Shown here: positions 951 through 53,107 of the stretch, one piece after another | Numbering within the stretch: the stretch's first letter is position 1 | How the letters are laid out: every line of letters starts with the position of its first letter | Sequence record: PV611058.1 | Strand: one strand, 5' to 3' | Length of the DNA: 64,000 nucleotides | The notes under the pieces: model-generated | What the model was told of the DNA's origin: nothing | The model's input: the letters and a program-made list of their open reading frames with translations, nothing else | Databases searched by the model: none | Translations under genes and position numbers: made by a program

Positions 951-1169
951 GGTTTTAAACTACAGAATTGATTGAATTGAATTATGAAAGGAATTAATTA
1001 TTTTATAGTGAACTCATCTAACTCATTTCATTCGTTAGCTGAAGAATATTCGTTACTACGTAACTCATATTCATTTCTTATAATTAATTATAAAGAACTT
1101 TAAAAGATTTAATACTTGACGGGATTTGTTGAAGACATTTTCATCCCCCCGCAGGGGAATGAAGACAAT

Positions 1170-1193
1170 AAAAAAGAGACAATTAAGTCTCTT
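1170..1193 (-). terminator. Minus-strand intrinsic terminator
   Basis: AAGAGAC-aattaa-GTCTCTT stem (1174-1193) with an A6 run on its left, which reads as a U tract on the minus strand. Confidence 0.65.
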
Positions 1194-1622
1194 AATTCTT
1201 GACGCTGATGGTTTCAGCATTTATTGTATTGCGAATTTCTTAAAATTCATTAAGAACGAAAGCGGGTTGCTCTGTTTCTCTCTATCGCAGTCATGTGCAA
1301 CGGTCGTCAGTCTTAATCATCCTGACACTCACCTGAAAGTCTATACAATCAAACTTCAGGCTGTTTATTAAATCACTTAATAAACTCCCTTAGCAAATCT
1401 GGTAAGGTGCGATCCTTATACATCTATCGAGGAACTCTCTGTATGCTTATCGGAGTTCTTTATTGAGCCGTGTCGCCGTGAGGGGTTCAAACTATGCCCA
1501 CATCTAACGGGTTTCTTCTGCTCATCGCACTGTTGAACTGCTCATCTGCCATCTACATTTTCGATAGGATCAGGTTCTAATTTATATGCATTTCTGCATT
1601 CAACAGGATTGTCATCACTACA
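1170..1622 (-). ncRNA. Candidate ~450-nt structured non-coding RNA (or origin primer transcript)
   Basis: No credible ORF. There is an extended -10 promoter at 1629-1637, at least 8 inverted-repeat stems, and a minus-strand terminator at 1170-1193. The family is not recognised. Confidence 0.5.
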
Positions 1623-1628
1623 ATTAAC

Positions 1629-1657
1629 ATTATAGCACCAAATTCAAAAGTGTCTCA
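1629..1657 (-). promoter_or_regulatory. Promoter TGAGAC-N17-TATAAT with extended -10 (TGC TATAAT)
   Basis: The minus strand reads TGAGACacttttgaatttggtgcTATAAT. The 14-mer TTTGGTGCTATAAT is identical to the gp55 promoter. Confidence 0.65.
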
Positions 1658-6409: not shown

Positions 6410-7141
6410 ATGATTGATCGTAGAATCCGATTAAGACCTAAAACCGCAGGTGCTAACTATGTGTATGGTGATTTTGGCAACAGTTCAGAACCAACATTGC
6501 TATCGTTTCTGCGTCCAACAAATGGTTTGGTTTGGACTGTAACCCCAACTGTAACTGAACAAAGGTCGGTTCAATATGAAACACAGTCCCCTATACATAC
6601 TAACAGTAACTACAACAACTACAAGAATACAACAAACACAATTTTCACTATCCAAGGTGAGTTTTATGCAAACACTGCTGCTGAAGCAATGTATGCATTG
6701 GCTTGTGTTCATTTTATTCGTTCCGTGTCCTTAATGGACTTTGGTCGTCAAGCAGCATCTGCTAATAATCCCGAACTAGCAATTGCAGGTGCACCACCGC
6801 CAATTTTACTATTAAGTGGGTATGGTCGTTATACATATAATGATATTCCTGTTATTTTGAAAGCATATAATTTTACATATCCAAATGATGTTTCTTACAT
6901 TCAGGTTCCATTGAATAGTAGTGATAGTACTTTTAATTTATCTGATATGGATAGTCGTAAATTCTTCGAACAGCTTAGAAGTACTGGATATATGAATCCA
7001 CAAGATGAGGTATGGGTTCCACAGAAAATATCGGTAACGCTTCAACTTGAAGAACAACCAACATCTGATTACATGACTAAAAAGTTCAACCTAAATGCAT
7101 TTAAGCGTGGTGAACTATTACGTAATGGAGGATTTATCTAA
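6410..7141 (+). CDS. Baseplate tail-tube initiator/cap protein (gp48/gp54-like)
   Basis: GAPPPILLLSGYG..YNDIPV..YPNDVSYI motif of contractile-system tube initiators. Lies upstream of gp53. GGAG SD before MIDRR. Confidence 0.6.
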   Translation: MIDRRIRLRPKTAGANYVYGDFGNSSEPTLLSFLRPTNGLVWTVTPTVTEQRSVQYETQSPIHTNSNYNNYKNTTNTIFTIQGEFYANTAAEAMYALACVHFIRSVSLMDFGRQAASANNPELAIAGAPPPILLLSGYGRYTYNDIPVILKAYNFTYPNDVSYIQVPLNSSDSTFNLSDMDSRKFFEQLRSTGYMNPQDEVWVPQKISVTLQLEEQPTSDYMTKKFNLNAFKRGELLRNGGFI

Positions 7142-51107: not shown

Positions 51108-53072
51108 ATGAGTATAAATCGAATTAGAGGTGATGGTGGTGTAATTATAGATAGTCAGGCATTTCTAGAATTACCTAAAGCACCGACTAAAGAAACCGCT
51201 GATGTGGTTAGATCAGGGATGATTAGATACAATAAAGGATGGAAAGCATTTGAAGGTGTACTAGACTTTGAAGATGGTTCAATGGCATATCGACGTTTTG
51301 CAAACCTAGATGCAAACGGTAAACTTCTTACTTCCCAATTACCAGATTCAGTAACTAGTGGTTTACAATTTGTTGGTACATATAATCCCATCCCAGATGA
51401 TATCGATCCACCTTTAGCACAAACTCCACTACCAGCACCATCACCATCGCTTAATGGTGATTATTATGTCGTTCGTGGTATAATGGATGCCGCACAAGCA
51501 CATTATGAAGCAAATAATCCACAAACAAGTCCTGTTACATTTACACCTACAAATCCAACTGGACAAGGTAATTGGATTGAAATTTTATATTATGTTGACT
51601 CTAATCCAAATATATCTGGTGCTAAACTAGTAACATACGCTTTTGCTAGAATTATTACTGCATCTATTCCCAGTACTGGACATGATGGCCTTGAAAATTT
51701 AGCAACAGATACTGACTTGACCAAACCATTTGCATCTGGTGTTCCAATGAACCAAACTGCACTTTCAGATGGTGATTGGATTATTATAACTGAAGATAAG
51801 AATATACGTCTTCGTCAGTCAAGAACAAGCATTTCCGCTGCTTCAGTATTATATGACAATACTGTAATGATTGCAAATCATCGCCAATTTAGAACAAACG
51901 CAGGGACCGTTCAAACATCCATAGATAACGTTGTGATTGAGTGTTTACGTAGAACTGGCGATTCCATGTATAATGATGGAACAGACGGCTCTGGGCGTTT
52001 TGGGGTGGTGTATGGCAGTGCAGCAGCACCAGCATTGACATTTAATAATAATCCGTTTGACCCAACGAACAACCCAGGTAATGACCCAACTAAGTGGTCC
52101 GATGCTAATACTGGTATATTCCATCCAGCAGATGATGCAATTGGTTTTACAACAGCCGGAACTGAGCGTGTTAGAATTAATAATGGAACATTAACATTAT
52201 TCCAAACTACCGCTACACCAGCAGCTACACCAGTAATACGTTTTGATAATGCATCAAACACAAACGTAGGGATAAGTGCAAGTAGTAATATTATTTCTTT
52301 AAGTTCAATGAATAAAGTTCAAGTTGAATTTAAAAATGGTGAATCACATTTTCATGGAAATATTATTGTAGATGGATCAACATCACTAACTGGTGATTTA
52401 AACGCAGGTAACATCACTGCCAGCGGGAATTTAGTTGTTAAAGGTAATACAACACTAGGAGACACTACTGGTGACACTATTACAGTTAATGGTGTTAGTA
52501 CTTATAATGCAAATACTAATTTCAATGGAACTAATAACAAATTCAAAAACATAAACTTACTAGAGAATGGTGTATTCACATTAGAAAGTACTACAAACCA
52601 AAGTGATATAAAACTACTTGGTGCAGACTTACGTTTCACTATGGGAAGTTATGCTGATGTAAGTATATATGATAACGGTGTTATTCGTACTCGTTTCAAC
52701 CGATATGGTATTCAATTACCAGTACTGGCTACAATTGATAACTCAGTTGGTGTTGATGGTATGATTGCATACTCAAATACCGAACGTACATCGATGCAGA
52801 AGGTCCAAGGACAATGGGTTCCAATTGGTTCTGGTTCTGTACGTACTGACCCGTTTACTGCGTCAGCGTGGGTTTTAAACGGCTCATATTACACATTAAC
52901 AGTAACTGCTAGTAACATAGTAACTGCTGAAATTCAAGAACTCGTAAGTACTGGTGTTTACACTCGTGTTGAAGTTGATAGTGTTACATTCAATGGAACA
53001 AGCGTAGTGTTCAGTATTCCTGCAACTCCTGATGTGAGATTTGCCGGACGTACACTGGTTACATTAAGATAA
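51108..53072 (+). CDS. Fibre-like virion structural protein
   Basis: SGMIRYN..FEG and GSAAAPALTF..NTGIFHP..DAIGFTTAGTER motifs, common in phage fibres. Confidence 0.65.
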   Translation: MSINRIRGDGGVIIDSQAFLELPKAPTKETADVVRSGMIRYNKGWKAFEGVLDFEDGSMAYRRFANLDANGKLLTSQLPDSVTSGLQFVGTYNPIPDDIDPPLAQTPLPAPSPSLNGDYYVVRGIMDAAQAHYEANNPQTSPVTFTPTNPTGQGNWIEILYYVDSNPNISGAKLVTYAFARIITASIPSTGHDGLENLATDTDLTKPFASGVPMNQTALSDGDWIIITEDKNIRLRQSRTSISAASVLYDNTVMIANHRQFRTNAGTVQTSIDNVVIECLRRTGDSMYNDGTDGSGRFGVVYGSAAAPALTFNNNPFDPTNNPGNDPTKWSDANTGIFHPADDAIGFTTAGTERVRINNGTLTLFQTTATPAATPVIRFDNASNTNVGISASSNIISLSSMNKVQVEFKNGESHFHGNIIVDGSTSLTGDLNAGNITASGNLVVKGNTTLGDTTGDTITVNGVSTYNANTNFNGTNNKFKNINLLENGVFTLESTTNQSDIKLLGADLRFTMGSYADVSIYDNGVIRTRFNRYGIQLPVLATIDNSVGVDGMIAYSNTERTSMQKVQGQWVPIGSGSVRTDPFTASAWVLNGSYYTLTVTASNIVTAEIQELVSTGVYTRVEVDSVTFNGTSVVFSIPATPDVRFAGRTLVTLR

Positions 53073-53073
53073 T

Positions 53074-53107
53074 AAAAAAGGGAGACATAAGTCTCCCTTT
53101 TCTTTTA
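53074..53107. terminator. Bidirectional terminator
   Basis: AAAGGGAGAC-ataa-GTCTCCCTTT. Confidence 0.85.

Follow-up and report, generated by a model that had tools for sequence, protein, structure and literature searches.

What does the largest ORF-free gap near one end of a 64,000-nucleotide stretch of sequence record PV611058.1 (the window) encode? The initial annotation proposed a minus-strand unit of about 450 nt at 1170-1657, read as a large phage non-coding RNA of an unrecognised family. We confirm the observation and find that its central inference is supported. Our analyses indicate a gene, at 1098-1621 on the minus strand and possibly continuing to about 1017, for a predicted, heavily pseudoknotted RNA of roughly 520-650 nucleotides that matches no catalogued RNA family. 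The transcript, its ends and its abundance are inferred from sequence, as no expression data were found for any RaK2-like phage in the literature searched.

The locus and its boundaries

The gap spans 705-1750 for ORFs of at least 100 aa, and 1372-1750 for ORFs of at least 60 aa. The RNA is antisense to both neighbours, and the window copy has no minus-strand gene downstream. A scan for promoters and terminators recovered both signals of the initial annotation.

1629-1656, minus strand: promoter with an extended -10 (TG at 1636-1637, TATAAT at 1629-1634) and a -35-like GAGACA 16 bp upstream; predicted transcription start about 1622.
1098-1621, minus strand: conserved RNA body, as matched by the family profile (nhmmer E = 5.7e-132, the only hit in the window).
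1170-1192, minus strand: terminator-like hairpin (AGAGAC/GUCUCU) plus U6, an optional module of the family.
1017-1075, minus strand: 3' extension, a helix GAAUAU/AUAUUC around a small hairpin, followed by hairpin CUAAC...GUUAG.

The TGnTATAAT at 1629-1637 is invariant in 20/20 orthologous loci, and an extended -10 is present in 45/52 non-redundant family copies, with a TGAAAC/GGAAC/GAGAC-type upstream hexamer, bacterial copies included. It resembles the 'divergent RpoD-like promoter' described for phage CBB (PMC5259590).

The hairpin plus U-run at 1170-1193, taken in the initial annotation as the terminator, has a covarying stem but is not the end of the conserved unit. It lies about 75 nt (profile end, 1098) to about 155 nt (3' extension, about 1017) inside it, and is absent in 18 of the 51 aligned copies, in eight of which a similar module sits right after the promoter instead. 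Conservation continues through a G-C hairpin, a second copy of a 12-nt repeat and the 3' extension. The extension is conserved in nearly all copies, and 4 of its pairs are compensatory in a 25-copy set; however, all its pairs are Watson-Crick, so neither the strand nor the RNA-versus-DNA level is settled here, and it may or may not belong to the same transcript. A TTGACA-like hexamer in the extension, considered as a sigma-70 promoter, is one arm of a covarying hairpin.

A predicted fold supported by covariation

The MFE z-score of the region is -3.2 on the minus strand and -2.6 on the plus strand. We built a structure of 77 pairs with four pseudoknots by hand and tested it on 51 non-redundant copies. 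In this alignment 96.8% of cells are paired, against 80.6% in shuffled controls and about 42% when partners are slid. Compensatory changes occur at 53 of 77 pairs, and 0/500 shuffles reach the observed value on any of five measures, although the shuffle control does not remove phylogenetic relatedness. Independent RNAalifold runs give 40/77 and 55/80 compensatory pairs. G-U outnumbers A-C 290 to 28, which fixes the strand. The predicted elements, all on the minus strand, are as follows.

1586-1599: H1, 5' hairpin with a GAAA loop in the window; length and sequence vary between copies, and the columns align poorly across the family.
1546-1573: H2, interrupted 8-bp helix closing the conserved loop GAAAAUGUA; 7 of 8 pairs have changes on both sides and 91.8% of cells are paired.
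1464-1541: H3 (1527-1541) and the H4 domain (1464-1524), with inner helix 1476-1479/1507-1510; 100% paired, six pairs with compensatory changes.
1432-1458: H5, 6-bp hairpin whose loop forms pseudoknot PK-C; all pairs covary, with up to 5 pair types.
1420-1473: PK-B, 1471-1473 with 1420-1422 (ACA/UGU in the window); 96% paired, 2 of 3 pairs compensatory, with three pair-sets seen (ACA/UGU, AUG/CAU and AUA/UAU).
1392-1447: PK-C, the H5 loop (1444-1447) with 1392-1395, just 5' of the invariant UAAGGGAG; 80.8% paired, 3 of 4 pairs compensatory, with a mutual information (MI) signal between positions 180 and 233. This is the weakest of the four pseudoknots.
1403-1418: H6, hairpin UAAG/CUUA; 2 pairs compensatory.
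1332-1360: H8, long hairpin whose loop (1343-1349) is the 5' strand of PK-A; 4 of 4 pairs covary.
1223-1229: 3' strand of PK-A, AUACAAU pairing with the H8 loop AUUGUAU (1343-1349); first detected by a column-pair scan, with all 7 of 7 pairs changed on both sides and 99.7% paired.
1305-1327: H9 hairpin; 97.4% paired, 2 pairs compensatory.
1266-1301: PK-D, GUUGC (1297-1301) with GCAAC (1266-1270), crossing H10/H11; 100% paired, 2 pairs compensatory (G-C to A-U in the GAP32/CBB-type copies). This is the most conserved segment of the family and was used as a search pattern.
1230-1289: H10 (1285-1289/1230-1234), enclosing H11 (1278-1282/1258-1262) and H12 (1253-1255/1238-1240); 98.7-100% paired, 9 pairs compensatory.
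1198-1211: R1, first copy of the co-evolving direct repeat (CAUCAGCGUCAAG in the window); its 5' part lies in the local hairpin 1204-1218.
1140-1163: H15, G-C-rich hairpin UUCAUUCCCC-UGC-GGGGGGAUGAA; 95% paired, with many U-G to C-G one-sided changes, and conserved in all 51 copies.
1115-1128: R2, second copy of the direct repeat (AAAUCCCGUCAAG).

Of the stems proposed in the initial annotation, 1432-1458, 1332-1360, 1306-1326 and 1237-1256 are supported by compensatory changes, and the base of 1363-1385 also covaries. Stems 1586-1599 and 1204-1218 exist in the window but lie in regions that vary in length or register between copies. Two proposed pairings are not supported. For stem 1388-1407, covariation favours the alternative 1403-1418. 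For the long-range CUAUCGA/UCGAUAG pairing (1561-1567/1424-1430), the 5' strand instead pairs locally (1563-1565 with 1551-1553, 18 of 51 sequences compensatory), while the far segment stays nearly invariant. The repeat GAUGAGCAG does occur twice in the window (1538-1546 and 1518-1526), but the second copy is not kept as a repeat in other clades. The four pseudoknots, which the initial annotation did not include, hold the predicted fold together.

Letters change identically in R1 and R2 across clades (MI 0.84 for positions 418/502). A common pairing partner for the two repeats was searched for by mutual information on 52 and 71 copies, and none was found.

The region does not appear to be coding, as stops occur in all three frames and indels are not multiples of three.

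Distribution of the family

The window copy is one member of a family. It is the only copy in the window by blastn, pattern and profile searches, and additional places flagged there are terminator look-alikes. Across all RaK2-like genera blastn finds 67-76% identity, and matches were found in 71 jumbo-phage records. There are 148 profile hits in the fetched loci. We estimate 2-5 copies per RaK2-like jumbo genome by combining BLAST places per record (2 for the RaK2 group, 4-5 for most others) with 2-5 full-length profile or pattern hits per complete genome contig, which are lower bounds. The copies form four cross-genus paralogue clusters, the paralogues are older than the phage genera, and the same paralogue lineage sits between different genes in different genera.

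Copies also sit beside integrases in prophages and islands of Serratia, Enterobacter, Silvania and 2 of 5,426 E. coli genomes, in contexts that include a cI-like repressor. These integrases belong to two unrelated families. Bacterial copies are closest to one phage paralogue, XaC1 (72% over 93%). None of 72,556 plasmid records has a match at E up to 1e-3.

Comparison with known RNAs

No identity was found with any Rfam 15 family (4,227 models, including GOLLD, ROOL, raiA, OLE, RNase P, tmRNA, 6S, SRP, group I/II introns and riboswitches). At E up to 10, the best overlapping hits for the window copy, a bacterial copy and a GAP32 paralogue score 13-26 bits against thresholds of 39-100, and are snoRNA, CRISPR-repeat or terminator-like chance matches. 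A gathering-threshold scan of the bacterial loci found only TPP and STnc450, both elsewhere. ARAGORN detected no tRNA or tmRNA in the 64-kb window, and no tRNA in the 15 loci scanned. No core E. coli sequence is similar, which argues against mimicry of a host RNA. Literature searches on RaK2-like phages, jumbo-phage ncRNAs, ROOL/GOLLD and transcriptomes gave no description of this RNA.

ROOL and GOLLD, large 'ornate' bacterial and phage-associated RNAs of unknown function that cryo-EM shows to be RNA-only multimers (bioRxiv 10.1101/2024.12.08.627333), are of the same size class (over 500 nt), with many helices and pseudoknots, invariant unpaired stretches, carriage by phages and prophages, and no associated protein gene. 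The RNA described here matches neither model, occurs in Enterobacterales and their jumbo phages, is present as 2-5 diverged paralogues per genome, and lacks nearby tRNA genes, to which ROOL and GOLLD are probably often adjacent.

Bacterial RNase P RNA is comparable in size, has a pseudoknotted core, and shares a 12-nt stretch with one mismatch (AGAGCAACCCGC against the corresponding rnpB stretch). However, local alignment with E. coli rnpB (from NZ_AP027515.1) scores 19 against 18.3 +/- 2.1 for shuffles, with 110/300 shuffles at least as high, and the family profile finds nothing in rnpB at E up to 100 even with filters off. Group I introns of T4-like phages also occur in several copies per genome with a structured, pseudoknotted core, but the unit studied here matches no intron model, has its own promoter, lies between complete genes and has no flanking exon. 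Finally, ncRNA002 of Pseudomonas jumbo phage PA5oct (451 nt, highly transcribed; PMC7318152), a distant relative of the RaK2-like phages, shows that such phages make abundant long ncRNAs, yet the family profile finds nothing in the PA5oct locus at E up to 10.

Possible roles of the RNA

With moderate confidence, we favour a trans-acting folded RNA, in the same loose class as ROOL and GOLLD. We infer that host RNA polymerase transcribes it early in infection, and from prophages or islands in uninfected cells, and that it folds into a compact tertiary structure acting either as the core of a ribonucleoprotein or as an RNA-only assembly. Long invariant single-stranded purine-rich segments are present. 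The RNA may engage a partner, not identified here, through its invariant loops and through two 12-nt repeats that co-evolve with the carrying genome; the effect could lie in host take-over, defence or counter-defence. Conservation of the promoter with the RNA in phage and bacterial copies supports autonomy, and the four pseudoknots, including a 7-bp loop-to-strand helix in which every pair covaries, are a signature of tertiary folding. Two observations fit this picture less well. If the hairpin plus U-run in the window copy terminates efficiently, the conserved 3' third would be left untranscribed, which a single trans-acting RNA does not explain. Additionally, in two other loci of the same genome type the RNA lies co-directionally upstream of small genes, as a cis-acting leader would. 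The roles listed in the initial annotation (structural RNA, ribozyme, decoy, R-loop primer) are not discriminated by our computations, and the origin-primer, cis-antitermination and mobile-ribozyme readings remain open.

An origin transcript, in the manner of ColE1 RNA II or the T4 oriF/oriG R-loop transcripts, is possible but unlikely. In this reading a structured pre-primer would form a persistent RNA-DNA hybrid near the G-run/C-run hairpin (1140-1163), the 3' extension hairpins would act on the displaced DNA strand, and the 2-5 copies would be the origins of a 350-kb genome. The predicted transcript is untranslated, 520-650 nt long and driven by a strong host-type promoter of the kind that the CBB paper finds mostly upstream of DNA-synthesis genes. 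Copies are dispersed and on one strand (121Q at 192.8, 247.5 and 326.9 kb), a G6/C4 hairpin is invariant, the 3' extension hairpins are purely Watson-Crick, and in Serratia fonticola the copy lies next to two ParB/RepB-like genes at the edge of an integrated element. However, the plasmids searched have no copy, conservation of the body goes far beyond what hybrid formation needs, and there is no AT-rich unwinding stretch downstream of the promoter, the body being 39.6% G+C against 23-24% in the flanks. Additionally, in the window copy a terminator-like module lies upstream of the supposed hybrid site, and GC skew in the window only follows gene orientation.

Equally doubtful is a cis-acting control element, in which the folded body modifies or senses something at the transcribing polymerase and decides read-through of the hairpin plus U-run. 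Such an element would control the 3' part and whatever lies downstream: early genes at other loci, antisense transcription into the convergent structural genes in the window, or into the cI-like repressor gene in prophages. The embedded module sits either after R1 or right after the promoter and never both, two other copies lie directly upstream of co-directional small genes, the RNA in prophages points towards the convergent cI-like gene, and R1 and R2 are two identical sites, as expected for alternative pairings. However, ten of the 51 copies have no such module at all (probably including individual copies L156-L158, where the post-R1 hairpin has no clear U-run), no sequence was found that could pair alternately with R1 and R2, and the window copy has no downstream gene on its strand. 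HK022 put-type antitermination RNAs, also structured and placed between a promoter and a terminator-like hairpin, appear to be about ten times smaller.

Less likely still is a selfish mobile RNA gene or ribozyme, with R1 and R2 as processing or joining sites. The shifting genomic neighbourhoods of one lineage, the relationship of bacterial copies to XaC1, the unrelated integrases, the invariant unpaired nucleotides of the pseudoknotted core and the concerted evolution of the repeats are compatible with it. However, no group I intron or other ribozyme model matches, the unit has its own promoter and interrupts no gene, no reverse transcriptase, endonuclease or transposase is shared between contexts, and the paralogue lineages are ancient and stable rather than recently copied. 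A DNA-level protein-binding array or a set of small protein-coding genes, although short 'hypothetical protein' CDSs are annotated here in several records, is very improbable, because the ten-fold excess of G-U over A-C is strand-specific and has no meaning for duplex DNA, compensatory changes preserve pairing and not codons, stops occur in all frames, and the annotated ORFs differ in frame, strand and position between records.

Only tentatively, the family could be a new class of large phage RNA with its own biochemical activity or architecture: a ribozyme, an RNA-only multimer or the RNA subunit of an unknown machine, kept as 2-5 specialised paralogues by every RaK2-like jumbo phage and lent to bacterial islands, with the two repeats as recognition sites for a genome-specific partner. 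That would add a new functional RNA type to the biology of E. coli phages.

Implications

Large, intricately folded RNAs with no known function are rare, and each earlier one (RNase P, group I/II introns, tmRNA, and more recently OLE, ROOL and GOLLD) opened a field. Several GenBank records currently annotate spurious small proteins over this RNA, and no RNA family model exists to flag it. The family is found in phages of E. coli, Salmonella, Klebsiella, Serratia, Yersinia, Erwinia and Cronobacter, including a phage isolated on E. coli K-12 MG1655, so its expression and structure can be examined directly. Every genus of the RaK2-like group keeps it in several old paralogues, and unrelated integrated elements have captured it. 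Both facts argue for an important, portable function.

Genomic context and conservation

The RNA unit lies in an Asteriusvirus, a 121Q/PBECO4-like RaK2-like jumbo phage of E. coli, and the region is 100% identical to phages EC.P1, BF17, vB_Ec-M-J and WPEC3. It occupies the largest ORF-free gap of the window, between a small plus-strand ORF (704-913) that follows the gp26/51-like baseplate-hub gene and the plus-strand endonuclease VII gene (1751-2242). A hairpin flanked by an A-run and a T-run (919-948) ends the upstream plus-strand genes, and the same CCAGC...GCTGG hairpin follows the RNA unit in many relatives and may stop transcription from both sides. The features to which we refer are as follows.

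1629-1634, minus strand: TATAAT of an extended -10 promoter, with TG upstream and a -35-like hexamer up to 1656
1098-1621, minus strand: match to the family profile
1343-1349 with 1223-1229, minus strand: pseudoknot of 7 bp formed by the H8 loop
1198-1211, minus strand: R1, first copy of a 12-nt motif
1174-1193, minus strand: terminator-like hairpin plus U-run
1140-1163, minus strand: G-C hairpin
1115-1128, minus strand: R2, second copy of the 12-nt motif
about 1017-1075: further conserved hairpins

A sequence scan recovered the promoter and the hairpin plus U-run that the initial annotation had proposed, and either strand folds better than shuffled sequences (z = -3.2 on the minus strand and -2.6 on the plus strand). 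Most of the stems proposed there by hand are real. However, two proposals fail, as stem 1388-1407 and a long-range pairing of 1561-1567 with 1424-1430 are replaced by alternatives that covary.

Using blastn, we found window 1108-1592 at 67-76% identity in every RaK2-like genus (Asteriusvirus, Alcyoneusvirus, Eneladusvirus, Mimasvirus, and the Munch and XaC1 groups), which is far more than expected for an intergenic region. In Eneladusvirus-type genomes the closest copy lies between different genes, encoding an ADP-ribosylglycohydrolase and a hypothetical protein. Thus, the unit travels as a whole. Several GenBank records annotate short 'hypothetical protein' CDSs on top of this RNA, on differing strands and in differing frames (in our extracted loci, L003 1131-1244 and 1680-1811, L005 1202-1492, L009 1209-1713, L014 1284-1436, L019 1572-1703, L020 1488-1694 and L175 3837-3992), and these are probably spurious. 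Additionally, the UE-S1 record annotates a 'repeat_region' inside it (locus L004, 1574-1731).

The -10 element is invariant in 20/20 orthologous loci. Across the family, 45 of 52 non-redundant copies have TGnTAnnnT and the rest have a plain -10, with an upstream hexamer of the TGAAAC/GGAAC/GAGAC type at 16-18 bp in phage and bacterial copies alike. This arrangement resembles the 'divergent RpoD-like promoter' reported for phage CBB mainly upstream of DNA-synthesis genes (PMC5259590). We read it as a host sigma-70 promoter, although the timing of its use is inferred.

Distribution of the family

We found that the unit belongs to a family and is not a single gene. A degenerate pattern of about 44 nt taken from the most conserved segment, together with a profile HMM built from the alignment, retrieved full-length relatives several times per genome. 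Phage 121Q has at least three, at 192.8, 247.5 and 326.9 kb, all on one strand, whereas BF and Yen9-04 have four, GAP32 has up to five and RaK2 has two. The copies of one genome are only about 70-73% identical to each other and fall into clusters shared across genera, so the paralogues predate those genera. The window itself holds only one copy (profile hit E = 5.7e-132), and a weak second blast match inside it is explained by a terminator hairpin at 53063-53095 that is about 82% similar to the one at 1159-1191. The other two copies in G17, a genome of the same type, lie co-directionally inside arrays of small hypothetical genes.

Outside jumbo phages, the same pattern hits eight bacterial records. 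In Enterobacter chinensis, Silvania hatchlandensis, two enterobacterial MAGs, Enterobacteriaceae bacterium RIT714 and a Serratia species, the RNA follows an integrase, which is a serine recombinase in some and a tyrosine integrase in others, and in three of these records it also faces a cI-like S24 repressor gene. In the complete Serratia fonticola chromosome (NZ_CP183218.1, locus L161, 61-5490), the RNA lies at the edge of an element with a large serine recombinase and two ParB/RepB-like genes, next to two tandem rof genes and tilS, and the rof duplication may mark the integration site. A full-length copy also sits on a 2.8-kb contig binned with a Clostridium sp. MAG (DPOH01000171.1, locus L162), but this is more likely a mis-binned phage fragment than a true Firmicute copy.

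Among 5,426 complete E. coli genomes, two carry the RNA, in a roughly 10-kb island beside ffs. In E. coli LR-29-1 (NZ_AP027515.1, locus L174, 4753-15303), this island lies between ffs and ybaA and has a tyrosine integrase fragment next to an IS3-family transposase gene (apparently interrupted by the IS3 element), the RNA, DUF4326/DUF488/dual-OB genes and a small recombinase. It may be a defence-type island. No plasmid searched carries the RNA, and in the phage collection only the 71 RaK2-like records do. Metagenome contigs with the pattern include several of 349-371 kb.

Predicted structure

RNAalifold on 18 and on 39 sequences gave 40/77 and 55/80 pairs with compensatory changes, respectively, and a scan of all column pairs and a mutual-information analysis added four pseudoknots. 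The final predicted structure has 77 pairs in 18 helices, and was tested on an independent MAFFT alignment of 51 non-redundant copies. In this alignment 96.8% of cells are paired, against 80.6% in shuffles and about 42% with slid partners, 53 pairs have compensatory changes, and none of 500 shuffles reaches the observed value on any measure. The shuffle control does not remove relatedness, but the slid-partner control and the number of distinct pair types argue that the signal is structural. The pseudoknot between the H8 loop and 1223-1229 covaries at every pair.

G-U cells outnumber A-C cells 290 to 28, so the selected strand is the minus strand of the window. The body is 39.6% G+C inside flanks of 23-24%, and all three frames are full of stops. 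Additionally, a recurrent insert hairpin containing UACAAUAUAGAUCCGUC-like letters appears at the tips of two different helices, H7 and H12, in different copies of the A3/A4 family alignment (for example in loci L012, L030, L010 and L014), but is absent in the window copy, and looks like a modular peripheral element. In the copy of phage A4 (locus L006), a 12-nt tandem duplication (GAGTTCCTCGAT) lies in the 3' strand region of H5, equivalent to window about 1430-1445.

Architecture of the unit

The unit is larger and odder than initially described. The terminator-like hairpin is missing from many copies, and one paralogue group instead has a GC hairpin plus U-run immediately after the promoter rather than after R1 (locus L064 at about 6700-6750, and likewise L164, L166, L168, L170, L171, L035 and L047). 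The two positions are mutually exclusive, and some copies have neither. Downstream of the terminator-like hairpin, all copies keep the G-C hairpin and a tail to about 1100, which contains R2. Beyond R2, a further 60-100 nt of conserved hairpins follow, with stems that covary but only through Watson-Crick pairs, although these parts are not necessarily transcribed together.

R1 and R2 change identically across clades. Both read CGUCAAG in the window, CGUCAG in BF-type genomes, CUUCAAG in RaK2-type genomes and CGACAA in one Serratia copy, and no complementary partner for them was found in the RNA. This suggests a shared external partner, or a copying or processing mechanism.

Comparison with known RNAs

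Rfam 15 gave nothing for three different family members, even at E up to 10, and ARAGORN found no tRNA or tmRNA. A relationship to RNase P RNA is rejected, as local alignment with E. coli rnpB scores 19 against 18.3 +/- 2.1 for shuffles and the family profile finds nothing. PA5oct ncRNA002, a 451-nt RNA from a distant relative, is unrelated. The papers on these phages that we examined mention no such RNA, and our literature searches found no transcriptome of a RaK2-like phage.

Interpretation

We provide sequence-based evidence that shows a new family of large, pseudoknotted, autonomously promoted RNAs. The mechanism is inferred, and with moderate confidence we favour a trans-acting folded RNA, either the core of a ribonucleoprotein or an RNA-only assembly. 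The conservation pattern, with four pseudoknots, long invariant unpaired purine-rich stretches and variable peripheral hairpins, is that of a tertiary-folded functional RNA. Additionally, the unit is independent of its neighbours, and very different mobile elements use it.

Three other mechanisms remain open, although we consider each less likely. An origin pre-primer fits the copy number and the promoter class, but does not fit the absence from plasmids or the structural constraints. Cis-acting read-through control, which we consider equally likely, fits the embedded hairpin plus U-run, but does not fit the optional nature of this module or the lack of a downstream gene in the window. A mobile ribozyme-like element is less likely still. 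A DNA-level or protein-coding reading is essentially excluded.

The proposed RNA is a real feature, larger than first reported, and a member of an undescribed family. Orphan large structured phage RNAs are already known, but this family is new and has unusual traits: ancient multi-copy paralogy, two co-evolving direct repeats, and a movable hairpin plus U-run module.
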